The notes under the pieces: generated by a model
The model's input: only the letters and a program-made list of their open reading frames with translations
Databases searched by the model: none
What the model was told of the DNA's origin: nothing
Part shown: positions 5,416-64,000 of the stretch, one piece after another
How the letters are laid out: every line of letters starts with the position of its first letter
How positions within the stretch are numbered: the first letter of the stretch is position 1
Position numbers and translations under genes: made by a program
Origin: Octopus sinensis
Lineage: Eukaryota
Length of the DNA stretch: 64,000 bases
Direction: 5' to 3'
Assembly: GCF_006345805.1 (NCBI RefSeq)
Contig: NC_043021.1
Location: forward strand, 11,904,001 to 11,968,000

Positions 5416-5765
5416 CAAATGGCGTTCGGATATAGCCGGCCGTTATTCGCGTCAACGCTTTCGCTATCTTGTCCGCAGGTCGAAGATCAACAAGTCCTAC
5501 TCTATGATCGATCCAAATAAGTTACGAGGAAACCGCGTAAAAAGTGGGGAACCAATTTAGTTTCAAGAGACTGAAAGTGCAGAAGAACACAGAAACCGGA
5601 GATTAATCTGTGCCCATTCCGTATATGCCACTTATGTAGATATTGAAAATTGCCGATTTGGTTGTATTTATTATGATATAAAGGGATTTGGGCAGAGTTA
5701 TAGGAAAGATGCACCCCACCGCTTGCTGGGGGAGCGGGGTATAGTGTAGGGCTTCTTTATTCTAT

Positions 5766-6160: not shown

Positions 6161-6786
6161 TTTATTTTATTTTATATATTTATTTATTTTAATGTTTGTG
6201 GATTTCACAAAACGGTAATTACGATTTCTGAAAATAAAATTTTTTATCAAGAATTTCTTTTTCTGTTTTTAATGTTTTTCACCATTTCGACCTCCTTTCT
6301 CACAAGGGGAACCTGTTCTTTTCCCATAGGACGGATATCCCGAAACTTTGCCGGGTTTTGCCACGGTGAAGGCAAGTGATGGATTTCCAACCTCACCAGA
6401 GGGTGGTTTGGGTGTAATTTCTAGCAGGTCAAGCGAGGTTCCTTCGCTAGTATGGTTATGCATTGAATAAATTTGATAAACACACACACACACACTGGAA
6501 GGCTAAGCAGGTCTAAATTTCGAAGTAATTTTCAACACTAGATTTTTTAAAGAATAATATGTACTTTACAAAAAAGTATTGCCTAATCCTTCAGCTTAAT
6601 GTTAAACTGTTTTTATTATAATTCGACATCTCTTGTCAAGAGTACAGGCGACAGTCAGATCGCTGATGTTTGTTGTGTACTCCGCTGTCGTTATTTGATT
6701 GCTGTTATTCTGAGTATCTGTATGTAGAGATCAGTTGTGTTTTGCAGGGTTGCTTTATTTTTACCTTTAACTTAGAAATTGCTGTT

Positions 6787-8100: not shown

Positions 8101-8380
8101 CAGAAGATAGAAAAATCTCCGAACGGAACTAAAAGTTGCGGCCTCCCCGCCAGACTGTTCCCTCATAAATACCGCAAAAATGAAAGTTGTCAAATGAAAT
8201 TTTCTACAAATATCCTTCAGATGGTGTAGATTCCAATTATATTATTTTATTCATTAATTCGTTTCAGCCATGCAGTTGCGGTCATGCTGGAGCACCACCA
8301 TGTAATCGGAATTTGTTGTAAGAATTTCCATAGATGGCGAGAGGAATTTCGGAAAATTCACAATAGTCGACTTTGTTTAT

Positions 8381-8781
8381 TCTTTCATTTGTTTCAGTTA
8401 TTTGACTGCCACCATGCTGGAGCACACTCTTGAAGGGTTTTCGTCGAACAAATCGCCCCCAGGACTAATTTTTTTTTAAAGCCTAGTATTTATTCTATCA
8501 GTTTGTTTTGCCGAACCGCTAATGTTAAGGGGACGTAAACGCATAAACAGCGGTTGTCAAGTGGTGATGTGAGGACAAACACAGACACAAACGCACACAT
8601 AGATATATACATAAATATATATACGACGGGCTTCTTTCAGTTTCCGTCAACCAAATCCCCTCACAAGGCTTTGGTCAGCCAGAGACAATAGTAGAAGACA
8701 CTTGCCCAAAGTGCCATGCAGTGAGACTGAACGCAGAACCATGTAGCTGGAAAGCAAGCTTCTTACCACACAGCCACGCCC
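8381..8781 (-). mobile_element. SINE family A
   Basis: Full head-to-tail similarity to the 5766-6160 copy. Confidence 0.88.
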
Positions 8782-9006
8782 GTTTCCTCAATTAAAAAAA
8801 AAAAAAAAAAAGGTAATCTTTTAATGAAATTTTTCTACCAGTAACCTTTCAGAGAGTGTAGATTATAATTACATCGAACACATCACATATCTACAAAACT
8901 TGAAATTTTGAGAAGAGTTCAAATTCTGCCGGTTCCACTTTTGCTTCAGTTCCTTTGGGGGCGATAAAAATGAAATACCAGTCAAATAGTTCCAACGTTC
9001 TATGCT

Positions 9007-9399
9007 CTTTACTCTTTTACTTGTTTCAGTCATTTGACTGCGGCCATGCTGGAGCACCGCCTTTAATCGAGCAACTCGACCTCAGGACTTATTCTTTTGT
9101 AAGCCCAGTACTTATTCTATCGGTCTCTTTTGCCGAACCGCTAAGCAACGGGGACATAAACACACCAGAATCGGTTGTCAAGCAATGCTAGGGGGGCAAA
9201 CACAGACACACAAACATATACACACACACACATATATATACATACATATATACGACAGGCTTCTTTCAGTTTCCGTCAACCAAATCCACTCACAAGGCAT
9301 TGGTCGGCCTGGGGCTATAGCAGAAGACACTTGTCCAAGGTGTCACGCAGTGGGACTGAACCCGGAACCATGTGGTTGGTTACTTACCACACAGCCACT
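9007..9399 (-). mobile_element. SINE family A with a 55-bp target-site duplication
   Basis: Full-length copy flanked by direct repeats 8952-9006 and 9400-9454 (one mismatch). Confidence 0.92.
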
Positions 9400-9469
9400 C
9401 CTTTGGGGACGATAAAAATGAAATACCAGTCAAATAGTTCCAACGTTCTATGCTATCGACCTTTTTTAT

Positions 9470-29354: not shown

Positions 29355-30003
29355 CCAAAGCCTTGTGAGTGGATTTGGTCGATGGAGACTGAAAGAAGCC
29401 CCTCGTACATATATGTGTGTGTATCTTTGCGTCTGTGTTTGTCCACCCCCCACCGCCTGACAGTCCCCCCCAAAACTTAGCGGTTCGGCAAAAGAAACCG
29501 ATAGAGTAAGTACCAGGCTTTAAAAAATACGAGTACTGGAGTTGATTCATTCGACAAGAAATCCTCAAAGCAGTGCTCCAGCATGGCCGCAGCCTAATGA
29601 CTGAAACAAGTAGAAGATAAAAGATAGGCATGGCTGTGTGATAAGAAGCTTGCTTCCCAACCAAATGGTCTTGGGTTCAGTCCCACTGCGTGGCACTTTG
29701 GACAAGTGTCTTCTACTATAGCCTCGGGCTGACCGAAGCCCCTTGTGAGTTGATTTGGTAGACGGAAACTGAAAGAAGCCTGTTGTATATGTATATGTTC
29801 GTATGTCTGTTTGTCCACTCCCCTCCCCCATTGCTTGACAACCGATGTTGGTATGGTTACATTCCTGTAACTTGGCGGCTCGGCAAAAGGGTACGATAGA
29901 ATAAGTACTCGGCTTACAAAGAATAAGTCGTGGGGTCGATTTGTTCGACTAAAGGCGGTGCTCCAGCATGGCCGCAGTCAAATGACTGAAACAAATAAAA
30001 GAA
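29355..30003 (+). mobile_element. Two tandem SINE family A copies (29355-29625 5'-truncated; 29627-30003 full)
   Basis: Two successive CCAGCATGGCCGCAG...GACTGAAACAA tails. Confidence 0.88.
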
Positions 30004-32199
30004 TATTGCGCAGAAAAGAAAAAGAAAGTCCTTTGGACATCATGATTTGAACCTGAAATCTTTTTTTCACTTATTCGTTGTATAGGGTAAAGAAATGTGG
30101 AAGTGTAAAGTTTGTTTTTAACAATAGACTCAACCCCATAACCCATTATTTGAAGAATTCTTTGGCTATAATGGTTTCGCCAGGCCAACACCCAAAATAG
30201 AAATAAAAATTTGCGAACTTAAAAGGAATTGTGAAAATAAATCTAGAAGGTACGACAAAGATAAGAAATGTATCTTGACACGTCTTTTTATGTACCCCAC
30301 GTTTTGTGTTGACTGTCCTTGCGATGTCCCCCTCAATTTTGATGAGATAAGCACAACGGGGATTAAGAACTGTGGAAGGTTGACTTGGACAAGGAAAGGC
30401 TCCCACGGAATATGGATTTCATAGAACTGAAAAAGAAATATAACATAGACATCAGCATGGCCGCAGCTCTAAGCTGAAACAAGAAGAAAAAAATAATAAT
30501 GGAGAGCAGGAGAAAGGAAGCAAGTGATGTCAGTTGATGGGGCAGGTAACACCATTTTCATTTTAACATTCTTTTTCATCTTTCATTGTATCATACGTTT
30601 CATTGTGTTTATGAAAAAACCAAAAAAAAAGAGTAAAGCTATAGATGCAAAGAGACTAAAACCCCGGATTATAAAACGGACAGTAAGAACGTTTAAATGG
30701 TACCGCATGTGAGTGGGGCGCATGCAGCCATTTCATTTCCATCAATTTTATTGTACGTATTACCATTTTTCGTTTTGCATTCGTTTTATGTTTTTGTCTG
30801 CACTGTGCAGACGTCTAATTTTCTGACGCTGCAACATAGTAACCACTGTTACCATATTTTTTTTTAATCTTTTCTATAACAATGACTGTATAGGTAGATG
30901 ACTTCATGTATACCATTTCTTTAAGTTTTGGCTATTATGGCAACATTTTAAAGCGTAGTTCTTTAAAATTGGGCTATACTTTTCTTTTGTAGGTGAAAAT
31001 AAACCGGTGTCTCTGAACTATTCCTGCTACCTAACGCGTAGACGTTATCAAGAATTTTTTCCCTGTAACATTACAGTTGCTACAAGCTTGCTCTAATTTC
31101 TTCACCTACACTTTACTCTGGCTATGAATGCATAAACTGATTTCAAACGAGATGAATTTTCTCGTATCAATATCGACTCAACACTTTGATCTAAAAACAC
31201 ATCATTTACTTCACCAAGTCCATTAATGTGAACAACCCGACTAAACAGGTCTTGGTTTCTTGTCTGTAACTTAACTGAACAGTAGAAATGAAATTGGTCG
31301 TTTGAAAACCAAAACCTTGGAATTTCCAAATATATACTGCTTACGTTTTGTCCAGATTTTTTTTTTTATCAAAAGCAACGAAACTCAAGTTACATCTTCA
31401 GCTGGGATTATATCGATACTTTTTTTCCCTTGCATATCGGTATTTTTGTCTGCCGTTCACTTGGAGAAACTTCGCAACCAAATAATTGACATCACTTCAT
31501 TTTTGTTGATTGGACGTGAAGCCTTCCTTTTTAAGGTAGTTTGCTGACAACTATAAAAGGCTTCGACGTAAAGCTTTCATCCAACAGGTTATAATCACGA
31601 GATACAGTAATAAAACGACTTAGCATTGGCCACCAATGTGCGTTCATAACTTTTGTGTCGGTCAGTGATAGAGGATTTCCTTTTATTATATAAGGACTGG
31701 CCATTGTACCTGAATGCTTTGCGAGTGATATCTTAGCGATATCGTCCTTCATCTCATCTATTTTTTTTAATTCAACAGTTGTTCATGGAACAGGTAGCCA
31801 GCCATCAAAATGGCCGAGTGTTCGACATTTGCTGACACCATCAGATCTTCTCGTCTTTTCAAAATAAGTTAACTTTTTGAAATTCAAATGAATCACTGGA
31901 TCATATTTTGCGAAGAAAAATTCGAATAAACGCCTGACAACCCATCTTCATATCTTCCATTTATCTTCTGGAAGAGGATTTAAATGCTCGGCTTTGCAAT
32001 GAAATCATGGGTCTATGTTTCTTGCGATTTGTAATTAAGACTTGCATCACACTTGAGCGCGACTCTCAATGCTAGAACTGTTCTCAACGCAAATTCTCGA
32101 CCACGTACGTAAAAAAAACAACCTATTTGTCAGATAAGTTGCCCAGTCTTACTGGCTCATTTTACAACAAATTGTGCTCCTTTTACTGTTACTAACACT

Positions 32200-36279: not shown

Positions 36280-36769
36280 CTAGTAGTATTGCCCGGCTCA
36301 ACGGGGATTTCAGGGGAGAGTTTCAGGGAGTCGCTGACGATGTATCGTGATGATCAAAAATCCGGCCTGCTAAAATTTGGTTAAAGTGATTCAAACTGCA
36401 GACTCAACGCTAAATGGTCACATTTAATTCAAAGTGTTAAAAATGTTATGAAAACAATTGGTATGCGTTCACAAAGTCCAAACGATTAATACGAAAAAAC
36501 CCTCCAGGCTACATCCCGAAACTTCATTTCTTCGCCGAATTTCTATTTCTTTATTACCCACTAGGGGCGACACAGAACGTACAGAACAAGACATTGGGGA
36601 CATAGAACATTACAATTAAAAGTATGGAGAATGAATTTTTTTAATGAAAATGATATGGAAGTGATGCTGACGGCCCCATCCGCCAGCACCACTTACCTGT
36701 CCTTCATAACCCATCGTCATTTATCATCTATCAAAAGCCCATCTTTTCTTATCATTTTCTCACTTAACC

Positions 36770-37272
36770 GCAGGAGTGGCTGTGTGGTAAGTAGCTTGCT
36801 AACCAACTACATGGTTCCGGGTTCAGTCCCACTGCGTGGCACCTTGGGCAAGTGTCTTCTGCTATAGCCCCGGGCCGACCAATGCCTTGTGAGTGGATTT
36901 GGTAGACGGAAATTGAAGGAAGCCTGTCGTGTATGTGTATATATATATATATATTATATATTATATTATATATATTATATATTATATATTATATTATATT
37001 ATATTATATTATATATTATATTATATATTATATATTATATATTATATATATATATTATATTATATTATATATATATGTGTTTGTTTGTCCCCCTACCATT
37101 GCTTGACAGCCGATGCTAGTGTGTTTGCGTTCCCGTCACTTAGCGGTTCGGCAAAAGAGACCGATAGAATAAGTACTGGGCTTACAAAGAATAAGTCCCG
37201 GGGTCGATTTGCTCGACTAAAGGCGGTGCTCCAGCATGGCCGCAGTCAAATGACTGAAACAAGTAAAAGAGT
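36770..37272 (+). mobile_element. SINE family A with an expanded AT-rich microsatellite
   Basis: Full head and tail; inserted into Z. Confidence 0.92.
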
Positions 37273-37988
37273 AACCTTTCATACTCTTTTATCCTCTCAT
37301 CCGAAAATGTCACCTTAATCACTTTTATACCCTCATTTACACACATCATCATTGTGTCCATTACTTCACCTGCCATCACCATGTAACTCCCATCTTCTCT
37401 CTCATACCATGCATCTTTACCAAAGATTCTTTACGAATTCTCATTGTCTTCCTTTTTTACAAAACATAAAATATGGGACTTGGGATTTTGTTTACTTTGT
37501 GTGTCATTATTTTTTGGTTTTCTTGTAGGCGGGGAGTGGGTGGGATCTTTGTTTGCAGGGGAAGGATGGGGCTCAGAGGGTGCGGGTGGTGTTGGGGTTC
37601 CACATAGTTCGATTTTTCTTTTTCTTTTTTTCCTTACATTCTCCCATTTCGTCTGGCCTTCCTTCTCCTCCTCCGTTTCTTCCTCCTCAGCTTTTTCCTG
37701 CTCCACCTCCTCCTTTTCCTGGTTTACAGTTTCTTGTGGGGGGAGGGCAGTAGGCTCTTATGTGGGCCCCTCAGGCCACACTTATAGCACCTTGGTGCTC
37801 TGCCCTCCACCCACACACTCTCATTACTATATTCCCCAAGATTATGTTCTCCGCCATCTTTTCTAGTGCACCCTCCTCTGCTTGAACGCTCATCTCTAGC
37901 GTTTTGCCACGTAAACCTTCATTTTTTTTTTTACGGTCGCTTGCAAAATGTCCGTCTCTTCTTCCACATCTTTTATAATCGCCGTGAC

Positions 37989-38074
37989 GATTGGTTAAAG
38001 TGATTGGTTAAAGTGATTGATTGGGTTAAAGTGATTGGGTTAAAGTGATTGGGTTAAAGTGATTGGGTTAAAGT
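37989..38074. repeat. 13/14-bp tandem repeat GATTG(G)GTTAAAGT x6
   Basis: Visible directly; interrupts Z ORF1. Confidence 0.95.
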
Positions 38075-39031
38075 GAATCGCCCATTCACCCTCTGTGTGT
38101 GTGGGGGGGAATCCCTTCAACTCTTATTCTATTTATTCTTTGGTTCATGTAGGATGGTAATAATATTACTTTTTCAGTTTTTATTGTCTTCGTTGCCATT
38201 TTCTTTGCTATATTTTTGTTTCCAAACTGCACTATTATAGTTCCGAACTTGTTTCCTCTTGTCATGAATGTGATTTCTTCCTCCTCCTCTCTCCTTAGCG
38301 CCTCCTCAATATCTTTCATTTTTATCATTTCTACTTTCTTATTTTCTTTTCCATATGTCCGGTATTTTATAATTCTCTTCATAAACCATTCTTCGCGTTT
38401 CTCTGGAAGTAGTTTTACCTCGCCACCTTCTTTGGTTATGTAAGCTTGAAAACCTGGCAATTTTTCTAGGTTTATCTCTTTTTTTCCTCTGCTGCTCCAG
38501 CGTACGTTTTCCCGGCTTTAATATCCATATTATTCACAGCGCCGATCAGCTCGTCCTCAGAGGTCGATGCTTCTGACAAGGTCTCGAATAACCATTCCTC
38601 CTCCGACTCTTCCATTAGGGAGGGGTCGTCCATATCCTTTTGTCTGTCTCACCACAGACAGACAACGGCCGCCAGAGCAGAAACAGTACAACAAGAAACC
38701 GTATCAACAAACGTACAATAACAATAACAATTTTTGCAACTTACAATTCCAGGAGCGTTCAAAAACAACCGACGTTCTCAAAAATTCTTTGCCGAATTTC
38801 TAATTCTTTATTATCCACTAGGGGCGACACAGAAATGAACATTACAATCACGAATGATGATACATTAAAATGCTATTTTGGGGGTCAATTAACATTTTTT
38901 TTTCTTTTGTGATACATAAAATTCCAATGAAATACAAAGACAGTTTTACAAAATTGACGAATGCAGTGGGGCGGGTCCGCGGACCCCACGCTCCCCGCCA
39001 CGACACTTAGCCTTGTTTTTCTTTTACGGGT

Positions 39032-42000
39032 CTATCTCGTATTTGTGAGGGACCTTTTACTCGCCACATTTTTCCACCTTTCATCAAACACTTTCTTACT
39101 CAGGTTCCTCCTCTCCAGTTCTATTTGTCTTTTCAGGTGGAATTTGAAGTATTCCACCAGACTAGAACCGGAGATGAAGTCGCCTGTTAGCATTCCTTTC
39201 ACCCTTGTCTTCCATACTGCCTGTTTCGCAGTTGAAACCACAGAGAAAACAATTCTTACCTTCTTTCGTTAAGTCAGGTGGGCTGATTTTTACAATGGAT
39301 TCGGCTGATAGCTGTACTCTTTCTCCACTTGACATCAGTTGTTCGGCGTAAACCCACATGTCTGTCACCTCCGGGCACTGCACGATCGCGTGCGAGACGG
39401 TTTCCCTGTCTCGCCCACATCTCGCGCAGGTCGGGCTGACTGGGGCACCATGCCTTGCAAGTTTGTCTCGAACAGGTAAGGCTCCTCGGTAACACTGCCA
39501 AACCAGACTTCTGGATATTATCCAGTGCCTTCGGCCCGAATGTACGTTGGAACAGACTGGCCAGCTGATTATCGTCGAAACCTAGGGTTTCCCCTAGCGT
39601 ATCATCGTTACCGGCCTCTACCAACCCTCTATAAAACACAGCGGTAGAACCACTGCCGCAGGCATTGCCCGAGCGACGGAATAGTCGGAGTGCCTTACGA
39701 CACTCCGTGTACCATGTACCCAACTTCGATCTACGATTATACCAGTCTTCCCGTCCACCGAAACTGGCGAACCTGGGGAACATCTGCTTCGCCAGCGGAG
39801 ACCACACCCGTTCACCATCCAGATGGATCCACAGGTGCCTTAGCCTCAGCGCATTTCTGCGCATCATTAGCCACGGCATCCCTAGTCCACCCTTTAACGG
39901 TTTTTGACAACAAATAGAGCGTCTCACAAGTGGTTTCGAGCCCTTCCACAAAAAGTGAAAGAGCTGTCTCTCCAACTTGTTCAACCACGAATCCGGGCAA
40001 GGCAAGGCGGTAGGTGATCACCGATGCGATAAACACATTGGCTACCTCCGCCCTACCTTTCAGGGATAACCACCGCCAAGACCAGGTCTTGACTACTGCG
40101 GCCACCCTGCTCGATACCTCGCTCCAGTTCTCCTCTATTTGGAGGCCTGGTCCAAACCAGACCCCGAGCAACTTAATCGGACCCTCCGTCCAACGTCCCA
40201 CGACGTTGTCTGGAGGCATCGACTTGCCTCTCCAGGTGCCGAGTTGCAAGCCGACCGACTTTTCACGATTAACTTTTGCTCCTGTCACCGTCTCGTAAAC
40301 CTCTATGGCCTTGCCTACTTTACGTATGTGGTCCACTTCAGTCACGATGATAGTGATGTCATCCGCGTACGCCGAAACCGACATATCACGTCCTAGTTGC
40401 CTCGGGATGCCGCTCAGTTTTCGCAGCAGCGGCTCAAGAGCCACTACATACAAAAGCGAGGAGAGCGGACATCCCTGGCGGACCGAGCGTTTGACTTTGA
40501 ACGGCTTAGAAAGAAAGCCGTTCACCCGAACTACCGAGTCGACGTTGTCATACATTTCTAAGATCCACCTGAGGAAGCCAAGACCCAGGCCGAACTGAGC
40601 CTGAACGGACACCAGGTAGTGATGGTCGACCCTATCGAAAGCTTTTGACTGGTCTAAATGGACCACTGCCCCTCCCTTGCCGGGATCATTATTTATTCCC
40701 TCTAGCGTGTATCTAATAAGATGGAGATTATCCTGAATGGCTCTGCCTGGTACGGCGCACGTTTGCGCTTTCTCAATCAGTCCATTCGCGACACGCGCCA
40801 ATCTGTTCGATAACACTTTGGCCAAAATCTTCAGCTCTGAGTTAAGCAGTGATGGGCCTGAAATTATATATTACATCCCCCTTGCTCTGGTCCTTCTTGA
40901 TTAGCGTCACCACTCCCCGGCGCACAGATCTGGGAATAAACCCATTCTGCTGCCAGTTTGCGTAGACGTTCGTCAGTAAGTCCCCGAACAAGGCCGGCAT
41001 ACTTTTATAAAGCTCGTAGGGCAGACCATCCAGTCCCGGCGCCTTACCCGCACTGCAGTCTGCCATGGCCTCTATTACCTCCTCAGGTGTGATCGGCTTC
41101 TCACTACACTCCGTGCCCTGCCCCGAGAGGCGCGGCAGCCCGTCGAGGAGGTCCGTAAGGTCCCTCCTCTCATCCGCCCCCCCCCAAAAGAGCTGGGCGA
41201 AGTGGTCCTGAAAAGCTTGACACATCTCCTCGGGTTCGTCTGTCAACTTACCTTGTTGGTTCGTCAGAGATCGAATTGTGGCATCGTTGCCACGTTGGGC
41301 TTCCACCACTCGGGCCCATCCCGCGGCATTAATTCCTTCGCTCCCCATTGTACGTTGTCTAGCCCTGACAATGCAACCCATGTGTTTGGCTTCGAGGTGC
41401 TGGTTTAAAACCAGTCTCTTGGCCTTCACCTGAGCCGCGTTGCCAGTTCGCATTGCTTCCTCTAGGTCCTTAACTAGAGTAGTTTCTTTTCTAGCCTCTC
41501 TAGCTACGAGATCTGCACTATACCTAATACTCATATTTTATGGTTCGCTTGAGGGCATACCACCATTTGTTGTTAATAATGGAACCGGTCAATGCCCTCT
41601 GGATCATTAACCTAATCCTGTCACTGTACTCCTTAATCGCCAAAAGGGACGTATTAAGTTTCCAGTAACCAGGACCTTTATTTATCTTATCTACGTCTAG
41701 CTTACAGGTGACCATCTTGTGGTCACTGTAGCTGACTGTGGAGCTGTGGACTCTTAACTAGGTTTCTATCTACCTTCCTAATTAAAATCCTATCTATGTA
41801 AGACCTTGACGATCCGTCGCTGTTTGATCATGTCCACAATGGAGCGTCCGGATATTCCAGTCTATATGGATCTACCAGCTCAAAACGTCTTAGTAGATCC
41901 AGGAAGCCAGCGTTTCCTTTCCTATTCGTTTGCGAGCCTACACAGTCTACCTGCACATCGCAGATTGTGTTGAAGTCCCCAAACATTACTACAGGGTACG

Positions 42001-42391
42001 ATGTACTCAGAAACTTCTCCAGATTCCGAAAATAATCACTTTTCCCGTTACCGGAGGGTGCGTAAACCGCAACCAGCCTGATTGTCTTACGACTGCTGAA
42101 CGTCAACTCAACGACGACCAGCCTACCTTCTGGATCTGCAAAAATCAACTTTTTCCCAGAAACCCGGTTCTTTTTAACCAGGACCAACACCCCGCTTCCG
42201 CTGCCCGCCGGGTTCGGAGAGATAATTCCCTCGTAGCCGTCGAACAACGGGAGCAGATCTCTTGGCCCCTTTAACCGGGTTTCTGTGGCAACATCTAAAT
42301 CCCGTGACCTGATGTCATTTAGGAGGCGCCCTTGCTTCCAGCTCGTCATCAGGCCACGCACATTTAAACACCCTACACAAATGCGAGACAT
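39032..42391 (-). pseudogene. Tx1 ORF2 (endonuclease + reverse transcriptase), several frameshifts and a stop
   Basis: ORF fragments 41828-42391, 41524-41715, 40842-41534, 39812-40825, 39274-40005, 39162-39383 and 39032-39241 are colinear. Confidence 0.93.
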
Positions 42392-42571
42392 TATTTACCT
42401 TATCAGTTTTTTCCTGCTCTGGTGGTCGTGAGGGGGAAGTTCGCTTTAAATAATGACTCGTGAGGGTCGAGTCGCGGACCCTTAATGTCCCCCCCCGGGT
42501 ACTCCTCTCTTATATTATAGTTCATTCTGTCAATCTTGAAAACCTCGACATTCTTGGGGAGTACCCTATGT

Positions 42572-42864
42572 TGTTTTATTATTACCCACAAGGGGCGAAC
42601 ATAGATGGGACAATACAATCTGATGATGGGGTCAGATACACGAATGGGTTTTACAACAAAGCGAATTTTAAAAATTTACAAAAAATTACAAAATATAAAA
42701 AATCGAATGGAGAACAGACCGGAAGACATTACGGATGGAGTGGGAGCGGGTTTAGCTCGGACCCCACGAGCCCCGCCTCCCCACTGATACTTTGGTTTCG
42801 TCCGGTTTTACATTTATGTGGTAACATCCATTCGCAACTTTCGTGCTACATTTTTCCATCGTTC
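42572..42864 (-). mobile_element. 293-bp 3' fragment T of a related Tx1 element, flanked by ~160-bp direct repeats
   Basis: Encodes ERWKNVARKLRM (host ORF2 end: DERWKNVASKRS) plus a 3' UTR and GCCCCTTGTGGGTAATAATAAA tail. Repeats at 42411-42571 and 42865-43024. Confidence 0.88.
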
Positions 42865-44173
42865 TTCCTGCTCTGGTGGTCGTGAGGGGGAAGTCCGCTT
42901 TAAATAATGACTCGTGAGGGTCGAGTCGCGGACCCTTAATGTCCTCCGGGTACTCCTCTCTTATTATATTATAGTTCATTCTATCAATCTTGAAACCCTC
43001 GACATTCTTGGGAGTACCCTATGTGTGTTGATCTTGTGTGCCGTTGGGACATTGTCCAGATATTTAGTTAGTCTGTCGTTTGCATTGTTTATAGAAATGT
43101 ATACTGTCTCGAACTCTATTATTTTTTCCCCTTTTTGTGGGAAACCAAGTTTGGGAGGGGTGGGTTTCCCCCCCTGGGTGTTAGTCTTTTTTATGTCAGG
43201 GTTTGGTGTGTTCGTGTCTGCGTTTTTCCTTTTCTTCACTTTCCTTGGTGTTATAAATTCGTCTTGTGTTTTCTCTGCTGTTACGGTCTTATTTTTCCTC
43301 CTCTCCTCTTCTGTTTTTCTCTTCTCTTCTTCCTCCTTCTTGCGGGCGGGGCATTCTGCTCGGATGTAGCCCTTTTCGCCACACCCGTAGCATCTGGGCT
43401 TACGCCCTTCTACCACCACCCGCAAATTTATATCGTCCTCGAAGTCGATACTTTCAGGGACCTCTTCTAATGTTTCCGGTGTTGCCTGCACTATTACCTG
43501 CAGCGCCTGTCCCCTTCCAGTTCTCCTTCTGAATCTTCGTTATGTTAATAATTTTTATTCCTTCCGGCCCCATAAATAGGGCTGGAATGAGGCACTTTAC
43601 CTCAATTTCAATCGGGATCTCTTCTGTTTTGATTTTCGATGTACGCCTCCCCATATAGGTGGGGAGGAGAATTATTTCATTCGTTTTAATGGGGTTGATT
43701 GAGTGGATCTTTGCTTTTTCTTCCTCTTTGAAGTATACCACAATTGTGGCATACTTCCTTCCCCGTGTCACGAATTCTATGTCTGACCAAATTGGTTTTA
43801 AACATTTTTCCGCTTGTTCTTTACTGATTTTTTTTTTTTCCTATTTTTTTTTCCTTGATTAAAAATGATTTTAAAATCAGTTTTTTTTTTTTTCATTGTT
43901 TATCTTAATTTCTTCTTGGAGGGTAGCCTTTATGCTGCTCCCCTCCCTCTTAAACGTTTCCTTGTATTTTTCAAAGTCTATATCTTCTGGTTTGATGTCT
44001 TCTGTCTTTGTCTTTCTGCCTGCTGCGGCTGCAAAGTTGAATTTCTTTTTTCTTTTTAATTGGTGAACTTGTTTCAGCCTCTTCTGTTTTGTTTCCTTTT
44101 GTAGGTGAACCTACATTCTTTTCCTTCAAAGGTGAACCTTCATTGGTAACGACTTCGTTTTTTTGTTATCCAT
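42752..44173 (-). pseudogene. Tx1 ORF1 (RRM-like + zinc knuckle), frameshifted
   Basis: ORF fragments 43454-43771, 42976-43491 and 42752-42979. Similar to ORF1 of Z and V. Confidence 0.85.
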
Positions 44174-44188
44174 TTTTCACAAATGGAT

Positions 44189-44552
44189 GCAGGAGTGGCT
44201 GTGTGGTAAGTAGCTTGCTAACCAACCACATGGTTCCGGGTTCAGTCCCACTGCGTGGCATCTTGGGCGAGTGTCTTCTGCTATAGCCTCGGGCCGACCA
44301 ATACCTTGTGAGTGGATTTGGTAGACGGAAACTGAAAGAAGCCTGTCGTATGTATGTATGTATGTGTTTGGGTGTATGTGTTTGTTCCTCTAGCATTGCT
44401 TGACAACCGATGCTGATGTGTTTGCGTCCCCGTCACTTAGCGGTTCGGCAAAAGAGACCGATGTAATAAGTCCCGGGGTCGAGTTGCTCGACTGAAGGCG
44501 GTGCTCCAGCATGGCTGCAGTCAAATGACTGAAACAAGTAAAAGGGTAAAGA
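44189..44552 (+). mobile_element. SINE family A inserted in the 5' UTR of X
   Basis: Full copy; duplicated at 50596-50958. Confidence 0.92.
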
Positions 44553-44792
44553 TATATATATATATATATATATTTTTTTTTTTTTTAAATTGTGTTGACA
44601 CACAAAATATATTTCACAATATTTCCCCTCCTTAAAGGAGGGGAATAACAAAGTTATCTGGTTCACAAAACCAGACAAAGTTCAACACAATAAATCAACT
44701 GACAATTTTCAAACACGGAAATTAAACACAATTTTAACAATTCACTAGCTCACCTTCAAAAACACAACCGACGCCTTCAAAAATTCTTTGCC

Positions 44793-47700
44793 GAATTTCT
44801 ATTTCTTTATTACCCACTAGGGGCGACACAAAAATTACAAAACAATCACGAATGATGAAATACATTAATATGCTTTTTGAGGGCAATTAAATATCTGAAT
44901 GATAAATAAAATCGAATGAATACACAATTACATAGACAGTTCTACAAAATTGACGAATGCAGTGGGGCGGGTCCACGGACCCTACGCTCCCCGCCACGAC
45001 ACTTAGCCTTGTGTTTTTCTTTTACGGGTCTATCTCGTATTTGTGAGGGACCTTTTACTCGCCACATTTTTCCACCTTTCATCAAACACTTTCTTACTCA
45101 GGTTCCTCCTCTCCAGTTCTATTTGTCTTTTCAGGTGGAATTTGAAGTATTCCACCAGACTAGAACCGGAGATGAAGTCGCCTGTTAGCATTCCTTTCAC
45201 CTTGTCTTCCATACTGCCTGTTTCGCAGTTGAAACCACAGAGAAAACAATTCTTACCTTCTTTCGTTAAGTCAGGTGGGCTGATTTTTACAATGGATTCG
45301 GCTGATAGCTGTACTCTTTCTCCACTTGACATCAGTTGTTCGGCGTAAACCCACATGTCTGTCACCTCCGGGCACTGCACGATCGCGTGCGAGACGGTTT
45401 CCCTGTCTCGCCCACATCTCGCGCAGGTCGGGCTGACTGGGGCACCATGCCTTGCAAGTTTGTCTCGAACAGGTAAGGCTCCTCGGTAACACTGCCAAAC
45501 CAGACTTCTGGATATTATCCAGTGCCTTCGGCCCGAATGTACGTTGGAACAGACTGGCCAGCTGATTATCGTCGAAACCTAGGGTTTCCCCTAGCGTATC
45601 ATCGTTACCGGCCTCTACCAACCCTCTATAAAACACAGCGGTAGAACCACTGCCGCAGGCATTGCCCGAGCGACGGAATAGTCGGAGTGCCTTACGACAC
45701 TCCGTGTACCATGTACCCAACTTCGATCTACGATTATACCAGTCTTCCCGTCCACCGAAACTGGCGAACCTGGGGAACATCTGCTTCGCCAGCGGAGACC
45801 ACACCCGTTCACCATCCAGATGGATCCACAGGTGCCTTAGCCTCAGCGCATTTCTGCGCATCATTAGCCACGGCATCCCTAGTCCACCCTTTAACGGTTT
45901 TTGACAACAAATAGAGCGTCTCACAAGTGGTTTCGAGCCCTTCCACAAAAAGTGAAAGAGCTGTCTCTCCAACTGTTCAACCACGAATCCGGGCAAGGCA
46001 AGGCGGTAGGTGATCACCGATGCGATAAACACATTGGCTACCTCCGCCCTACCTTTCAGGGATAACCACCGCCAAGACCAGGTCTTGACTACTGCGGCCA
46101 CCCTGCTCGATACTCGCTCCAGTTCTCCTCTATTTGGAGGCCTGGTCCAAACCAGACCCCGAGCAACTTAATCGGACCCTCCGTCCAACGTCCCACGACG
46201 TTGTCTGGAGGCATCGACTTGCCTCTCCAGGTGCCGAGTTGCAAGCCGACCGACTTTTCACGATTAACTTTTGCTCCTGTCACCGTCTCGTAACCTCTAT
46301 GGCCTTGCCTACTTTACGTATGTGGTCCACTTCAGTCACGATGATAGTGATGTCATCCGCGTACGCCGAAACCGACATATCACGTCCTAGTTGCCTCGGG
46401 ATGCCGCTCAGTTTTCGCAGCAGCGGCTCAAGAGCCACTACATACAAAAGCGAGGAGAGCGGACATCCCTGGCGGACCGAGCGTTTGACTTTGAACGGCT
46501 TAAAGAAAGCCGTTCACCCGAACTACCGAGTCGACGTTGTCATACATTCTAAGATCCACCTGAGGAAGCCAAGACCCAGCCGAACTGAGCCTGAACGGAC
46601 ACCAGGTAGTGATGGTCGACCCTATCGAAAGCTTTTGACTGGTCTAAATGGACCACTGCCCCTCCCTTGCCGGGATCATTATTTATTCCCTCTAGCGTGT
46701 ATCTAATAAGATGGAGATTATCCTGAATGGCTTGCCTGGTACGGCGCACGTTTGCGCTTTCTCAATCAGTCCATTCGCGACACGCGCCAATCTGTTCGAT
46801 AACACTTTGGCCAAATCTTCAGCTCTGAGTTAGCAGTGATGGGCCTGAAATTATATATTACATCCCCCTTGCTCTGGTCCTTCTTGATTAGCGTCACCAC
46901 TCCCCGGCGCACAGATCTGGAATAAACCCATTCTGCTGCCAGTTTGCGTAGACGTTCGTCAGTAAGTCCCCGAACAAGGCCGGCATACTTTTATAAAGCT
47001 CGTAGGGCAGACCATCCAGTCCCGGCGCCTTACCCGCACTGCAGTCTGCCATGGCCTCTATTACCTCCTCAGGTGTGATCGGCTTCTCACTACACTCCGT
47101 GCCCTGCCCCGAGAGGCGCGGCAGCCCGTCGAGGAGGTCCGTAAGGTCCCTCCTCTCATCCGCCCCCCCCCCCAAAAGAGCTGGGCGAAGTGGTCCTGAA
47201 AAGCTTGACACATCTCCTCGGGTTCGTCTGTCAACTTACCTTGTTGGTTCGTCAGAGATCGAATTGTGGCATCGTTGCCACGTTGGGCTTCCACCACTCG
47301 GGCCCATCCCGCGGCATTAATTCCTTCGCTCCCCATTGTACGTTTCTAGCCCTGACAATGCAACCCATGTGTTTGGCTTCGAGGTGCTGGTTTAAAACCA
47401 GTCTCTTGGCCTTCACCTGAGCCGCGTTGCCAGTTCGCATTGCTTCCTCTAGGTCCTTAACTAGAGTAGTTTCTTTTCTAGCCTCTCTAGCTACGAGATC
47501 TGCACTATACCTAATACTCATATTTATGGTTCGCTTGAGGGCATACCACCATTTGTTGTTAATAATGGAACCGGTCAATGCCCTCTGGATCATTAACCTA
47601 ATCCTGTCACTGTACTCCTTAATCGCCAAAAGGGACGTATTAAGTTTCCAGTAACCAGGACCTTTATTTATCTTATCTACGTCTAGCTTACAGGTGACCA

Positions 47701-50700
47701 TCTTGTGGTCACTGTAGCTGACTGTGGAGCTGTGGACTCTTAACTAGGTTTCTATCTACCTTCCTAATTAAAATCCTATCTATGTAAGACCTTGACGATC
47801 CGTCGCTGTTTGATCATGTCCACAATGGAGCGTCCGGATATTCCAGTCTATATGGATCTACCAGCTCAAAACGTCTTAGTAGATCCAGGAAGCCAGCGTT
47901 TCCTTTCCTATTCGTTTGCGAGCCTACACAGTCTACCTGCACATCGCATTGTGTTGAAGTCCCCAAACATTACTACAGGGTACGATGTACTCAGAAACTT
48001 CTCCAGATTCCGAAAATAATCACTTTTCCCGTTACCGGAGGGTGCGTAAACCGCAACCAGCCTGATTGTCTTACGACTGCTGAACGTCAACTCAACGACG
48101 ACCAGCCTCCTTCTGGATCTGCAAAATCAACTTTTTCCCAGAAACCCGGTTCTTTTTAACCAGGACCAACACCCCGCTTCCGCTGCCCGCCGGGTTCGGA
48201 GAGATAATTCCCTCGTAGCCGTCGAACAACGGGAGCAGATCTCTTGGCCCCTTTAACCGGGTTTCTGTGGCAACATCTAAATCCCGTGACCTGATGTCAT
48301 TTAGGAGGCGCCCTTGCTTCCAGCTCGTCATCAGGCCACGCACATTTAAACACCCTACACAAATGCGAGACATTATTTACCTTATCAGTTTTTTCCTGCT
48401 CTGGTGGTCGTGAGGGGGAAGTCCGCTTTAAATAATGACTCGTGAGGGTCGAGTCGCGGACCCTTAATGTCCCCCGGGTACTCCTCTCTTATTATATTAT
48501 AGTTCATTGTCAATCTTGAAAACCTCGACATTCTTGGGGAGCACCCTATGTTGTTTTATTATTACCCACAAGGGGCGAACATAGATGGGACAATACAATC
48601 TGATGATGGGGTCAGATACACGAATGGGTTTTACAACAAAGCGAATTTAAAATTTACAAAAATTACAAAATATAAAAATCGAATGAGAACAGACCGAAGA
48701 CATACGGATGGAGTGGGAGCGGGTTTAGCTCGGACCCCACGAGCCCCGCCTCCCCACTGATACTTTGGTTTCGTCGGTTTTACATTTATGTGGTAACATC
48801 CATTCGCAACTTCGTGCTACATTTTTCCATCGTTCTTCCTGCTCTGGTGGTCGTGAGGGGGAAGTCGCTTTAAATAATGACTCGTGGGGTCGAGTCGCGG
48901 ACCCTTAATGTCCCCCCCGGGTACTCCTCTCTTATTATAGTTCATTCTGTCAATCTTGAAAACCTCGACATTCTTGGGAGTACCCTATGTTGTTTTATTA
49001 TTACCCACAGGGGCGAACATAGATGGGACAATACATCTGATGGTGGGGTCAGATACACGAATGGGTTTTACAACAAAGCGAATTTTAAAAATTTACAAAA
49101 ATTTACAAATATAAAAAATCGAATGGAGAACAGACCGGAGACATTACGGATGGAGTGGGAGCGGGTTTAGCTCGGACCCCACGAGCCCCGCCTCCCCACT
49201 GATACTTTGGTTTCGTCCGTTTTACATTATGTGGTAACATCCATTCGCAACTTTCGTGCTACATTTTTCCATCGTTCTTCCTGCTCTGGTGGTCGTGAGG
49301 GGGAAGTCCGCTTTAAATAATGACTCGTGAGGGTCGAGTCGCGGACCCTTAATGTCCTCCGGGTACTCCTCTCTTTATATATAGTTCATTCTATCAATCT
49401 TGAAACCCTCGACATTCTTGGGAGTACCCTATGTGTGTTGATCTTGTGTGCCGTTGGGACATTGTCCAGATATTTAGTTAGTCTGTCGTTTGCATTGTTT
49501 ATAGAAATGTATACTGTCTCGAACTCTATTATTTTTTCCCCTTTTTGTGGGAAACCAAGTTTGGGAGGGGTGGGTTCCCCCCCCTGGGTGTTAGTCTTTT
49601 TTATGTCAGGGTTTGGTGTGTTCGTGTCTGCGTTTTTCCTTTTCTTCACTTTCCTTGGTGTTTAAATTCGTCTTGTGTTTTCTCTGCTGTTACGGTCTTA
49701 TTTTTCCTCCTCTCCTCTTCTGTTTTTCTCTTCTCTTCTTCCTCCTTCTTGCGGGCGGGGCATTCTGCTCGGATGTAGCCCTTTTCGCCACACCCGTAGC
49801 ATCTGGGCTTACGCCCTTCTACCACCACCCGCAAATTTATATCGTCCTCGAAGTCGATACTTTCAGGGACCTCTTCTAATGTTTCCGGTGTTGCCTGCAC
49901 TATTACCTGCAGCGCCTGTCCCCTTCCAGTTCTCCTTCTGAATCTTCGTTATGTTAATAATTTTTATTCCTTCCGGCCCCATAAATAGGGCTGGAATGAG
50001 GCACTTTACCTCAATTTCAATCGGGATCTCTTCTGTTTTGATTTTCGATGTACGCCTCCCATATAGGTGGGGAGGAGAATTATTTCATTCGTTTTAATGG
50101 GGTTGATTGAGTGGATCTTTGCTTTTTCTTCCTCTTTGAAGTATACCACAATTGTGGCATACTTCCTTCCCCGTGTCACGAATTCTATGTCTGACCAAAT
50201 TGGTTTTAAACATTTTTCCGCTTGTTCTTTACTGATTTTTTTTTTTTTTCCTATTTTTTTTTCCTTGATTAAAAATGATTTAAATCAGTTTTTTTTTTTT
50301 TTCATTGTTTATCTAATTTCTTCTTGAGGGTAGCCTTTATGCTGCTCCCCTCCCTCTTAAACGTTTCCTTGTATTTTTCAAAGTCTATATCTTCTGGTTT
50401 GATGTCTTCTGTCTTTGTCTTTCTGCCTGCTGCGGCTGCAAAGTTGAATTTCTTTTTTCTTTTTAATTGGTGAACTTGTTTCAGCCTCTTCTGTTTTGTT
50501 TCCTTTTGTAGGTGAACCTACATTCTTTTCCTTCAAAGGTGAACCTTCATTGGTAACGACTTCGTTTTTTTGTTATCCATTTTTCACAAATGGATGCAGG
50601 AGTGGCTGTGTGGTAAGTAGCTTGCTAACCAACCACATGGTTCCGGGTTCAGTCCCACTGCGTGGCATCTTGGGCGAGTGTCTTCTGCTATAGCCTCGGG

Positions 50701-50964
50701 CCGACCAATACCTTGTGAGTGGATTTGGTAGACGGAAACTGAAAGAAGCCTGTCGTATGTATGTATGTATGTGTTTGGTGTATGTGTTTGTTCCTCTAGC
50801 ATTGCTTGACAACCGATGCTGATGTGTTTGCGTCCCCGTCACTTAGCGGTTCGGCAAAAGAGACCGATGTAATAATCCCCCGGGTCGAGTTGCTCGACTG
50901 AAGGCGGTGCTCCAGCATGGCTGCAGTCAAATGACTGAAACAAGTAAAAGGGTAAAGAGTAATA

Positions 50965-51026
<62 letters not shown>

Positions 51027-51197
51027 TGTTAAATTGTGTTGACACACAAAATATATTTCACAATATTTCCCCTCCTTAAAGGAGGGGAATAACAAAGTTA
51101 TCTGGTTCACAAAACCAGACAAAGTTCAACACAATAAATCACTGACAATTTTCAAACACGGAAATTAAACACAATTTTAACATTCACTAGCTCACCT
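44793..51197 (-). mobile_element. Near-identical tandem duplicate M of X, with the Y-type 3' UTR and two copies of insert T
   Basis: Body matches X apart from mostly 1-bp indels. 3' UTR matches 51235-51450. The R-T-R-T-R array spans 48393-49434. Confidence 0.9.
50596..50958 (+). mobile_element. SINE family A (duplicate of 44189-44552)
   Basis: Same position in the duplicated unit and the same diagnostic variants. Confidence 0.92.
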
Positions 51198-51234
51198 TCA
51201 AAAACACAACCGACGCCTTCAAAAATTCTTTGCC

Positions 51235-52543
51235 GAATTTCTATTTCTTTATTACCCACTAGGGGCGACACAAAAATACAAACAATCACGAATGATGAAA
51301 TACATTAATATGCTTTTTGAGGGCAATTAAATATCTGAATGATAAATAAATCGAATGAATACACAATTACATAGACAGTTCTACAAAATTGACGAATGCA
51401 GTGGGGCGGGTCCACGGACCCTACGCTCCCCGCCACGACACTTAGCCTTGTGTTTTTCTTTTACGGGTCTATCTCGTATTTGTGAGGGACCTTTTACTCG
51501 CCACATTTTTCCACCTTTCATCAAACACTTTCTTACTCAGGTTCCTCCTCTCCAGTTCTATTTGTCTTTTCAGGTGGAATTTGAAGTATTCCACCAGACT
51601 AGAACCGGAGATGAAGTCGCCTGTTAGCATTCCTTTCACCCTTGTCTTCCATACTGCCTGTTTCGCAGTTGAAACCACAGAGAAAACAATTCTTACCTTC
51701 TTTCGTTAAAAAATCAGGTGGGCTGATTTTTACAATGGATTCGGCTGATAGCTGTACTCTTTCTCCACTTGACATCAGTTGTTCGGCGTAAACCCACATG
51801 TCTGTCACCTCCGGGCACTGCACGATCGCGTGCGAGACGGTTTCCCTGTCTCGCCCACATCTCGCGCAGGTCGGGCTGACTGGGGCACCATGCCTTGCAA
51901 GTTTGTCTCGAACAGGTAAGGCTCCTCGGTAACACTGCCAAGCCAAATACTTCTGGATATTATCCAGTGCCTTCGGCCCGAATGTACGTTGGAACAGACT
52001 GGCCAGCTGATTATCATCGAAACTGGGGTTTCCCCTAGCGTATCATCGTTACCGGCCTCTACCAACCCTCTATAAAACACAGCGGTAGAACCACTGCCGC
52101 AGGCATTGCCCGAGCGACGGAATAGTCGGAGTGCCTTACGACACTCCGTGTACCATGTACCCAACTTCGATCTACGATTATACCAGTCTTCCCGTCCACC
52201 GAAACAGGTGAACCTGGGGAACATCTGCTTCGCCAGCGGAGACCACACCCGTTCACCATCCAGATGGATCCACAGGTGCCTTAGCCTCAGCGCATTTCTG
52301 CGCATCATTAGCCACGGCATCCCTAGTCCACCCTTTAACGGTTTTTGACAACAAATAGAGCGTCTCATAAGTGGTTTCGAGCCCTTCCACAAAAAGTGAG
52401 CTGTCTCTCCAACTTGTTCAACCACGAATCCGGGCAAGGCACGACGGCAAGGCGTTAGGTGATCACCGATGCGATAAACACATTGGCTACCTCCGCCCTA
52501 CCTTTCAGGGATAACCACCGCCAAGACCAGGTCTTGACTACTG
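51235..52543 (-). mobile_element. 5'-truncated Tx1 LINE Y
   Basis: ORF2 C-terminal part and 3' tail, with private substitutions relative to X/M. Similarity stops abruptly at 52543. Confidence 0.92.
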
Positions 52544-53149
52544 AGTAAAGTTCACTATTCAATGCATGGGATAAGGCCTAAACAAGCACATTATCGATTT
52601 TTGCACTTGCGAGATGGATTTCGGAACAGAAATAGCGCGGTTCAATTTTCATTCGCCTAAACTTTAAGTGACCCATTTTTGGTGGTTCTATGATTTGTTG
52701 GCTAGGAGATGTGCCGGGAAGTTAAACACACACACAAGTTGAGTTTTATATATATATATATATATATATAGATAATTCCACAGTCACGAATAGACTTATA
52801 TTCTCTTTGTGTATATGTATAAGCTCAAAGCTGGAGAAACAGCTATAGATTTAAAAAGAAAACTGCTGGCCTATTGTAATGCATCCTGCAAAAGAAATGG
52901 AGCCTGTAAATGATCAGTTAGTTGTCCACAAGTCAGGAAGAAAAACTCCCCTCCCCCCACATGCAGTAATAGAGCAGTTGTATTTTTATATATCGTTTAG
53001 CAGAGTATGTTCTGAACTAGTGAGGAGGGGACACTTTCCATACATACCCTGCAGTATTTAATACTACAAGGCTTCGTTATATATGACGGCGAGGCGCACA
53101 CTTGTGAAGATATAATTTAATGTTTGAGGTTTCTTTCGTTAGTATGCCA

Positions 53150-62716: not shown

Positions 62717-63463
62717 CTCTCGCAATCATTAGCAAAAATTACGTTGGAATTTACTAATCTGCCATGGACTGACCAATTCTACTATATACATAGATACATA
62801 TGGACATTTGAATTTTCCACTTGAATTGGTTGGAAACTGGTAGTCTGTTTCGTATCCTTTCAATTTCCTGCAGATAAAGCCGTTTTTCATGTTGGGCAAA
62901 GCTATTGGAATCGATATCATTGTTTGTCTGGCAAAGCACCTGATCAACAAAAGGAATGCAATTTAGAAATGAAAAAAAAAAAACCCAGTGAACTTACTCA
63001 AAAGTTCAATGCCAACTTGCCTCTTTATCTGACAATCTATTGGCAAAAATGACATTGAGAATTATTAATCTGTCATGGCCTGACCCATTATACCATGTCA
63101 ATGGACAGTGCTGTTTTCTGTCTCAAATTAAATGTACAAGTGAAAGTTGCTTTGGTACGCATTTGCCGGATTTAGGATAAACTTGTGATTCATTCAGCAT
63201 TAATCCATGAACCATGGATTAATACAGGCTATGTTATCTTCCAATCTTCAACACTCATAAATTTAAACTACAGTGATACCACACAGCATGAATTTAATTC
63301 ATTCCATGACTGAGCTCATCTTATTTACTCGTTTTACAAATCAATTTTACTTGTTGAAATCAACTAAAACGTAATCTGTTCTAGCCCTCAAAAATAATTT
63401 TTAAGGGTTTTAAAACAAAAGCTGTTTCAAGTAAAATGACGATTACAAAAAATGTAAAAATAT

Positions 63464-64000
63464 GTAAACTGGTTTTATTAAATGAATTACCCTTAAAGCT
63501 GGGATGGTTTGTAAACTAGTTTTATTAACTGAATTACCTTAAAGCTGGGACAATTTATAAACTGGTTTTATTAACTGAAGTACCTTAAAGCTGGGACAAT
63601 TTATAAACTGGTTTTATTAACTGAAGTACCTTAAAGCTGGGACAATTTGTAAACTGGTTTTATTAAATGAATTACCCTTAAAGCTGGGACAATTTGTAAA
63701 CTGGTTTTATTAAATGAATTACCCTTAAAGCTGGGACAGTTTGTAAACTGGTTTTATTAAATGAATTACCCTTAAAGCTGGGACAGTTTGTAAACTGGTT
63801 TTATTAACTGAATTACCTTAAAGCTGGGACGGTTTGTAAACTGGTTTTATTAACTGAATTACCTTAAAGCTGGGACGGTTTGTAAACTGGTTTTATTAAA
63901 TGAATTACCTTAAACCTGGGACGGTTTGTAAACTGGTTTTATTAACTGAATTACCTTAAAGCTGGGACGGTTTGTAAACTGGTTTTATTAAATGAATTAC
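63464..64000. repeat. 46/47-bp satellite running off the window end
   Basis: About 11-12 copies of GTAAACTGGTTTTATTAA(A/C)TGAATTACC(C)TTAAAGCTGGGAC(AA/GG)TTT. Confidence 0.97.

Follow-up and report, generated by a model that had tools for sequence, protein, structure and literature searches.

Head-to-tail stacking of L1/Tx1-type retrotransposons at one site of a non-autonomous Helitron in Octopus sinensis

How does a small DNA transposon come to hold a chain of retrotransposons many times its own length, all of them facing the same way and all joined at the same short motif? The question is raised by a stretch of 64,000 nt of the Octopus sinensis genome (RefSeq assembly GCF_006345805.1, contig NC_043021.1, positions 11,904,001 to 11,968,000; C25:11904001-11968000 in the notation used here for other loci), hereafter called the window. 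The original prediction, made from the sequence alone, described a Helitron filled with a head-to-tail chain of Tx1 elements that regenerate their own target motif. We find that the observation is confirmed, while the interpretation is supported in part and has to be corrected with regard to the target-site duplication (TSD), the unit called M and the contiguity of the two Helitron halves. The chain is probably the work of a family of L1/Tx1-type long interspersed nuclear elements (LINEs) that insert at a fixed site of the Helitron and re-use the TSD, so that stacks arise, with a later unequal crossover at this locus.

A fixed insertion site within the Helitron

Between the two Helitron ends lie four head-to-tail units on the minus strand, Y, M, X and Z. 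A motif scan with AGAAATTCGGC(A/G)AAGAA returned exactly four occurrences in the window, all on the minus strand, against 0 expected by chance. Copy a (AGAAATTCGGCAAAGAA, 51226..51242) lies between Y and M, copy b (44784..44800) between M and X, and copy c (38785..38801) between X and Z, while copy d (AGAAATTCGGCGAAGAA, 36528..36544) is continuous with the 3′ part of the Helitron. The motif positions and junction strings given earlier are correct, and the tail-to-head order of Z, X, M and Y likewise holds, with the 17-mer at each junction. The placement of the junction in the middle of the motif is not borne out, since the whole 17-mer is Helitron sequence and not element sequence. Intact Helitron copies carry it: they read ...AACATTGTAGAAATTCGGCAAAGAAATGAATTT at the site, in the layout ...ACTTTACTCAGT CAGCTG...(102 nt)...AACATTGT AGAAATTCGGCAAAGAA ATGAATTTTCGGG.... 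The target motif is thus present in uninterrupted Helitrons, of which there are at least 838 empty sites (at most one mismatch over the 33-nt site; this and all other genome-wide counts refer to the 2.72-Gb assembly). The idea that GGCAAAGAA belongs to the 3′ end of the element itself was rejected, as the motif is host sequence found in every empty Helitron.

Full-length single insertions carry (A)GAAATTCGGCAAAGAA on both sides, that is, a TSD of 16-17 bp. Each joint of a stack retains one TSD copy, and all three internal joints of the window carry the 17-mer. The motif is thus not regenerated by the elements' own 5′ ends, as had been supposed, but is the ordinary TSD left by each insertion.

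The same arrangement recurs throughout the genome. The 3′ terminus of the element reads ...CCCCTAGTGGGTAATAAAGAA(A/T)T or ...GTCGCCCCTAGTGGGTAATAAAGAA(A/T)T, and in the family closest to X the 17-mer directly follows this terminus in all 17 tails that were fetched; what comes next is downstream Helitron in 10 of them and the 5′ end of a further element (TTTTTGAAGGNGTCGGTTGT) in 7. All 17 full-length 5′ ends, recognized by TTTTTGAAGGNGTCGGTTGT, have the 17-mer directly upstream, preceded by Helitron in nine loci and by the tail of another element in eight (at one of these, L071, only a 25-nt remnant of the upstream tail is left). Pattern counts give about 14 tail-to-host, nine host-to-5′ and nine tail-to-head junctions, the last being distributed over five loci, namely the window and arrays on C5, C6, C8 and C15. 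With every one of the 17 tails and 17 full-length 5′ ends at the 17-mer, and with downstream flanks that are not random, this LINE family is strictly site-specific for one position in the Helitron family, and the site-specific system that had been proposed is real. Specificity for a target sequence is typical of many members of the Tx1 clade, though not obligatory.

The host Helitron and the units of the chain

The split host is a non-autonomous Helitron of about 600 bp on the minus strand. Its ends had been placed at 36280 and 52772, in agreement with the conserved termini: the 5′ TC is at 52772 and the 3′ CTAG at 36281-36284, so that the minus strand reads A|TCTATATATA... at 52772 and ...GGGCAATACTACTAG|T at 36281. 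The 5′ part (52544..52772, minus strand) starts TCTATATA..., is preceded by A at 52773 and is homologous to the left half of 29 intact copies; the 3′ part (36281..36527, minus strand) ends ...CCCCGTTGAGCCGGGCAATACTACTAG, with T following at 36280. In a comparison sample of 29 other fetched copies (L002-L030), the start A|TCTATATATATAAAACTCAAC was found in 10 of 10 classifiable copies and the end ...CCGGGCAATACTGCTAG, that is, CTAG and then T, in 23 of 23 copies carrying that 3′ end. The short CTAG 3′ variant has 71 genome matches, 69 of which end in CTAG followed by T. Outside the A and T the flanks of the copies are otherwise unrelated. The family thus has the TC and CTRR termini of Helitrons and their insertion between A and T without TSD. 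Copies are about 560-835 bp long, mostly about 600 bp, and at least 40 scored copies of the 3′ half, among 1,146 candidates, are 95-97% identical. The only 3′ hairpin is CCCG-N6-CGGG, 11 nt before CTAG, with a folding free energy of -2.8 kcal/mol, no better than that of shuffled sequences (z -0.5); it is kept in a divergent 3′ variant (L005). A search of Rfam with the Helitron and the array yielded no meaningful match, as the few hits, on TA repeats, stayed below threshold, which rules out a known RNA gene as the target.

The two halves in the window come from the same Helitron family rather than from different ones, although they are not contiguous in the way that had been expected of 36281-36536 and 52544-52772: in intact copies these segments are about 113 nt apart, a distance made up of 102 nt missing in the window plus part of the 17-mer. 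The family is variable at its 3′ end, with at least three continuations after ...CCCCGTTGAG (host flanks L019, L027-L030, L032, L036, L038, L042 and L045). A long variant (AAATACTGATCTAAAAGAA...), which shares the target region, has 284 copies, and a third form has AAA followed directly by TCTATATATA...; in L028 this third form continues as the 5′ end of another copy, giving head-to-tail Helitrons. Most LINE-occupied Helitron copies are not of the short CTAG type.

The best guide to the nature of the inserted elements is X (38802..44783, minus strand), a full-length but dead LINE whose 5′ untranslated region (UTR) starts TTTTTGAAGGCGTCGGTTGT and whose 3′ end is ...CCCCTAGTGGATAATAAAGAATT. Its reading frames are broken by many stops and frameshifts. 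Remnants of open reading frame (ORF) 1 lie at 42976-43840 and include the zinc-knuckle-like motif CYGCGEKGYIRAEC (43230-43275), in which Y replaces the H of CCHC; this may be a mutation in the dead copy. Remnants of ORF2 (39162-42394) comprise an N-terminal apurinic/apyrimidinic endonuclease (APE) domain (Pfam Exo_endo_phos, 41828-42394), a reverse transcriptase (RT) (Pfam RVT_1, 39812-40870) and a C-terminal zinc domain (zf-RVT, PF13966, 39162-39581). In a phmmer search of PDB with the ORF2 read-through, human L1 ORF2p was the best match (E=6.5e-65, residues 2-862, covering APE and RT), whereas R2 proteins reached only about 1e-22 and matched in the RT region alone. The nearest database proteins are unnamed cephalopod sequences with 61-63% identity, the best matches including Argonauta hians, and the only relative bearing the name of a clade comes from a coral, at 38% identity, and owes its annotation as 'Transposon TX1 149 kDa protein' to similarity. 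Named homologues in the protein database searches were too few for placing the RT in a clade. Judged by its domains and its L1 ORF2p match, assignment of the element to the L1/Tx1 group of LINEs with APE and RT is supported, and to this extent the earlier designation as Tx1 elements stands. A repeat annotation of O. vulgaris lists 13 recently active L1-Tx1 families (PMC13282606).

Z (36545..38784, minus strand) is a non-autonomous, ORF1-only relative, in keeping with the original prediction. It lacks ORF2, and its ORF1-like frame (38086-38517) is 46% identical to ORF1 of X over 57 residues. Z and X have the 5′-terminal 27-36 nt or so in common, in keeping with the shared stretch of about 36 nt noticed earlier, and their 3′ terminus is common as well. 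A relative 89% identical to Z, 1.7 kb long, sits alone in the same Helitron site at C16:42374047-42375777. Y (51243..52543, minus strand) is a 5′-truncated LINE reduced to its last 1.3 kb or so, with the end of ORF2, including zf-RVT, and the 3′ UTR. Since the 3′ UTR ends of Y and X are about 14% divergent and Z is a different element, the three are shown to be independent insertions of different subfamilies. It had been remarked that no clean TSD is visible for Y, and none is present; the terminal addition that this had seemed to permit is not its cause. Y starts inside ORF2 and is joined to the Helitron via a 4-nt microhomology, CAGT, with 102 nt of host deleted, and this truncation, microhomology joining and deletion explain the missing TSD.

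The family as a whole is a low-copy one, made up of autonomous elements of about 5.3-6 kb and the 1.7-kb ORF1-only derivative. Relatives with open frames of about 1,126-1,135 amino acids exist, some of them in the C5 array. The same 3′ terminus is found in sister LINE families (468 exact tails genome-wide), which have recurring flanks of their own (AGGTATTTCGTCTG, A/CAGAAACGTCACCAC, TGGCATGGTTTGTCC and AAGACAACTCATTTACCGATACCC...), at loci such as L048-L060, C9:70499073-70514875, C2:57146888-57158792, C2:193350645-193362814 and C3:86302749-86308041. They too form head-to-tail arrays, with a period of 5.4 kb and four units on C9, and with a period of about 1.7 kb and up to eight units on C2. 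One of the families, Family C, shares about 92% identity with the Helitron-targeting family in the final 1.4 kb, yet uses another site.

The window is strewn with copies of a tRNA-type short interspersed nuclear element (SINE), some 350-400 bp long and containing a microsatellite. Together with the protein matches from Argonauta hians, these SINEs would suggest an octopod cephalopod. Copies outside the array lie at 5763-6163, 8376-8783, 9005-9405, 20300-20688 and 29627-30005. Within the array, antisense copies are found in Z (36770-37274, plus strand, with (TA)n), in X (44190-44543, plus strand) and in M (50597-50949); the copy in Z contains a 139-bp (TA)n expansion at 36938-37076. Z also has a 14-bp minisatellite (GATTGGGTTAAAGT, about six copies) at 37989-38076, downstream of its ORF1-like frame. 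Self-comparison of the window revealed two further tandem repeats, a short-period array at 2318-2940 and one with a period of about 46 bp at 63459-64000, which runs off the right end of the window.

M (44801..51225, minus strand) is a full-length unit of another kind. X and M are nearly identical: only 10 substitutions separate them over 5,668 aligned nt, and a SINE insertion is common to both. M is not itself an insertion, however, and its 3′ end is that of Y. In a three-way alignment of Y, M and X, M equals X from its 5′ end to the interval 45014-45202, beyond which it equals Y as far as its 3′ end. On the upstream side of the breakpoint, 27 informative columns unite M with X and none unite it with Y, whereas downstream 54 unite it with Y and four with X. 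Over the last 280 nt or so M and X are only about 86-90% identical. A clean switch of this kind is the signature of an unequal crossover in which Y exchanged with the 3′ part of X homologous to it. M thus arose by recombination (unless the assembly has produced the same topology artefactually) and not by retrotransposition, and the window accordingly records three insertions rather than four. The only large structural difference between X and M is the copy number of a 442-bp tandem repeat between ORF1 and ORF2, with about 1.4 copies in X (42408-43029) and about 2.4 in M (48393-49439).

The duplication of X and M would be artefactual if the true locus were Y-X-Z and the assembler had looped via the 3′ regions of Y and X, which are about 95% similar. 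The combination of so few substitutions in 5.7 kb with 38 indel events, mostly of 1 nt, is typical of long-read consensus noise, and apparent haplotig duplicates of another insertion occur elsewhere in the assembly. The pattern at the breakpoint is exactly the one that a real crossover gives, and the 442-bp repeat differs in copy number, though both facts are compatible with an artefact too. We consider an artefact unlikely, but not so unlikely as to be neglected. The duplicates in question, C8:80039125-80044460, C9549:19120-24453 and C9043:27277-32610, comprise one insertion with its flanks and are 99.4-100% identical; two of them are on small scaffolds. Most likely they represent haplotigs or duplicates made in assembly, and the insertion was counted once.

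Growth of the stack and its alternatives

The junctions are best accounted for by target-primed reverse transcription at one fixed site of the abundant Helitron-N family. The endonuclease of the element would nick the bottom strand at ...AACATTGT|AGAAATTC..., and a second nick, some 17 nt downstream, would cut the top strand after ...GGCAAAGAA. Nicks staggered in this way would leave each full-length insertion flanked by a duplication of 16-17 bp. As the duplicated target would still be usable, further elements could insert there and produce a head-to-tail stack with one target copy per joint. In the window, Z, X and Y represent three such insertions, independent of one another, in one Helitron; 5′ truncation of Y and its joining by microhomology would have cost 102 nt of upstream Helitron, and a later unequal crossover of Y with the homologous 3′ part of X would have given rise to M and enlarged the array.

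Other loci indicate that stacking is a recurrent outcome. When 1.4-1.5 kb at each element end was compared, neighbours in the arrays on C5, C6, C8 and C15 turned out not to be each other's closest relatives; for example, members E1, E2 and E3 of the C5 array are closest to copies on C9, C2 and C15, respectively. Since the closest relatives are at other loci, these arrays are stacks of independent insertions. The notion of indefinite stacking in a safe-harbour repeat is therefore upheld in so far as stacking recurs at five loci, and amended in that the motif comes from the TSD and M is a recombinant.

What is striking is the extent of the pile-up. The 21 independent insertions fall into 13 loci in the presence of at least 838 near-perfect empty sites (P about 3e-10); about 0.25 coincidences would be expected under equal targeting and eight were seen, and the effective target pool that fits the data is about 15-30 sites. 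No diagnostic differences between occupied and empty Helitrons were found in the 120 nt upstream of the site. Occupied copies are enriched for the long 3′ variant; a special targetable Helitron subfamily was nevertheless rejected as an explanation, its 284 copies being far too many for the stacking excess. It is tempting to speculate that occupied sites are actively preferred over about 840 equally good empty ones, which would make array building a property of the integration mechanism itself, although we hold this only tentatively and think it rather less probable than its negation. Possible causes would be that the promoter-proximal 5′ junction of the resident is a better or more accessible target, or that several RNAs are used per priming event. 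The sister-family arrays of up to eight units are compatible with such a preference. If it is true, this octopus LINE group would, at dispersed transposon targets, generate 'safe-harbour' arrays that extend themselves, and nascent satellites as well.

As to the direction of growth, in five of five adjacent pairs the member lying upstream has the closer nearest relative, a crude proxy for age, and a truncated member with a host deletion is at the upstream end in both arrays that have one (Y in the window, and L071). These polarity data fit growth at the 5′ TSD, as proposed for R1, and we lean slightly towards the view that new copies enter the TSD on the 5′ side of the resident element.

Several points weigh against the account given here. 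The positions of the nicks are deduced from the junctions. The three internal copies of the 17-mer have GGCA where the distal copy has GGCG, so that one later mutation is required. Simple re-use of a regenerated site leaves the pile-up unexplained, and the stacking excess calls for a further factor, be it accessibility, a local preference or the use of several templates in one event. The evidence on polarity is a crude proxy, to which the window itself adds nothing. M, which differs from X mainly by 1-nt indels, could be an assembly artefact. Finally, the support extends to the L1/Tx1 group at large, and membership in the Tx1 clade itself is only a possibility.

Alternatively, the whole chain may have been laid down in one priming event, by an RT jumping from the 5′ end of one element RNA to the 3′ end of the next, the RNAs carrying target-derived ends as a result of read-through or of transcription started upstream. 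Template jumping is known for the R2 reverse transcriptase. A concatemer of this kind would account for stacking orders of magnitude above random re-targeting, and for the fact that the truncated, host-deleted member is the most upstream one in two of the five arrays. The subfamilies, on the other hand, differ in within-family divergence and, together with the trend towards younger upstream members, suggest different arrival times; X and Z each have a SINE insertion of their own while Y has none, and RNAs carrying target sequence have to be assumed. In the R1 precedent, moreover, the arrays have been explained by sequential insertion (PMC2718515). A concatemer thus seems improbable to us, albeit less so than either of the other two explanations of the chain.

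One of these invokes tandem amplification of a single insertion at the DNA level, whether by replication slippage or by unequal exchange. M can be shown to have arisen in this way, and unequal exchange is a known route from dimers to arrays (PMC5932611), but it needs at least two copies to begin. Y and X differ by 14% at their 3′ UTR ends, Z is ORF1-only with a different interior, and members of the other arrays are closest to copies at other loci, all of which makes amplification very unlikely as the origin of the whole chain. The other, telomere-like addition to a broken end in the manner of HeT-A and TART, followed by internalization, can practically be dismissed. It would suit the head-to-tail order, the mixture of autonomous and ORF1-only elements and the missing TSD of Y, for which truncation, microhomology and deletion are a sufficient explanation. 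It is contradicted by the presence of both Helitron flanks, derived from one copy, and of exactly one target copy at every joint, and single insertions elsewhere have the target on both sides. Sequential insertion at a re-used target, followed by unequal crossover, is hence the explanation that we prefer, and what it leaves unexplained is the very strong preference for sites already occupied.

Novelty and comparison with known systems

What is new is that the target is a Helitron, that the host is an octopus and that several subfamilies are mixed with an ORF1-only element. We found no report of a Helitron-targeting LINE in the searchable literature. In an animal that is neither arthropod nor vertebrate, the system offers a clean case of a target-specific LINE whose copies can be counted and whose safe harbour is a Helitron. 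Because its target is dispersed (at least 838 empty and about 13 occupied sites) and not a homogenized ribosomal DNA (rDNA) array, the preference for occupied sites can be quantified, and the old question of why R1- and Tx1-type elements stack becomes directly testable. One and the same locus displays double insertion and unequal exchange, the path that has been proposed to lead from transposon to satellite DNA. In addition, the close LINEs with other fixed sites (about 92% nucleotide identity over the last 1.4 kb) offer material for studying how the specificity of an APE endonuclease changes.

The nearest parallel is R1 in the 28S rDNA of Drosophila. Tandem R1 elements have a 14-bp TSD between units, the arrays are put down to new copies entering the 5′ TSD of an R1 already in place, and in some species occupied units hold two to three copies on average (Stage & Eickbush 2009, PMC2718515). 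An R1 array with 33-nt rDNA spacers has also been described, and double insertion followed by unequal exchange was proposed as the route to arrays (McGurk & Barbash 2018, PMC5932611). The octopus family resembles R1 in being a strictly site-specific LINE of the APE type whose head-to-tail units are spaced by a target of TSD length, and in forming arrays that are later enlarged by unequal exchange; growth by insertion into the 5′ TSD may be a further common trait. It differs in its target, which is a dispersed Helitron-N family of at least 838 sites and not a tandem rRNA gene, in its TSD of 16-17 bp instead of 14 bp and in being of L1/Tx1 type rather than of the R1 clade; its arrays, furthermore, mix several subfamilies and an ORF1-only derivative.

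A second parallel is SINEU-3 of crocodilians, which is mobilized by a Tx1-clade LINE and targets Mariner-N4_AMi with a 16-bp TSD; its tandems 'sandwiching a TSD' have been attributed to sequential insertion (Kojima 2015, PMC4494074). L1/Tx1-type machinery, a single site in a non-autonomous DNA transposon, a similar TSD length and tandem stacking are common to both systems, whereas SINEs in a mariner element there are replaced by full-length LINEs and an ORF1-only element in a Helitron here. Tx1L of Xenopus laevis has its only insertion site inside the piggyBac-type Tx1D, forming 'composite' elements (as cited in PMC4494074). As far as that account goes, it is a Tx1-type LINE and, like the octopus family, has its target inside a non-autonomous DNA transposon, the difference being that the host is of piggyBac type there and a Helitron here.

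The analogy originally drawn was with the telomeres of Drosophila, where HeT-A, TART and TAHRE also form a head-to-tail mixture of autonomous and gag-only non-LTR (lacking long terminal repeats) elements. These are added to chromosome ends without target or TSD, in contrast to the octopus chain with its TSD joints and its two flanks. The likeness is accordingly superficial, and the true precedents are the arrays of R1 and of the Tx1-driven SINEU-3, which have the TSD at their joints.

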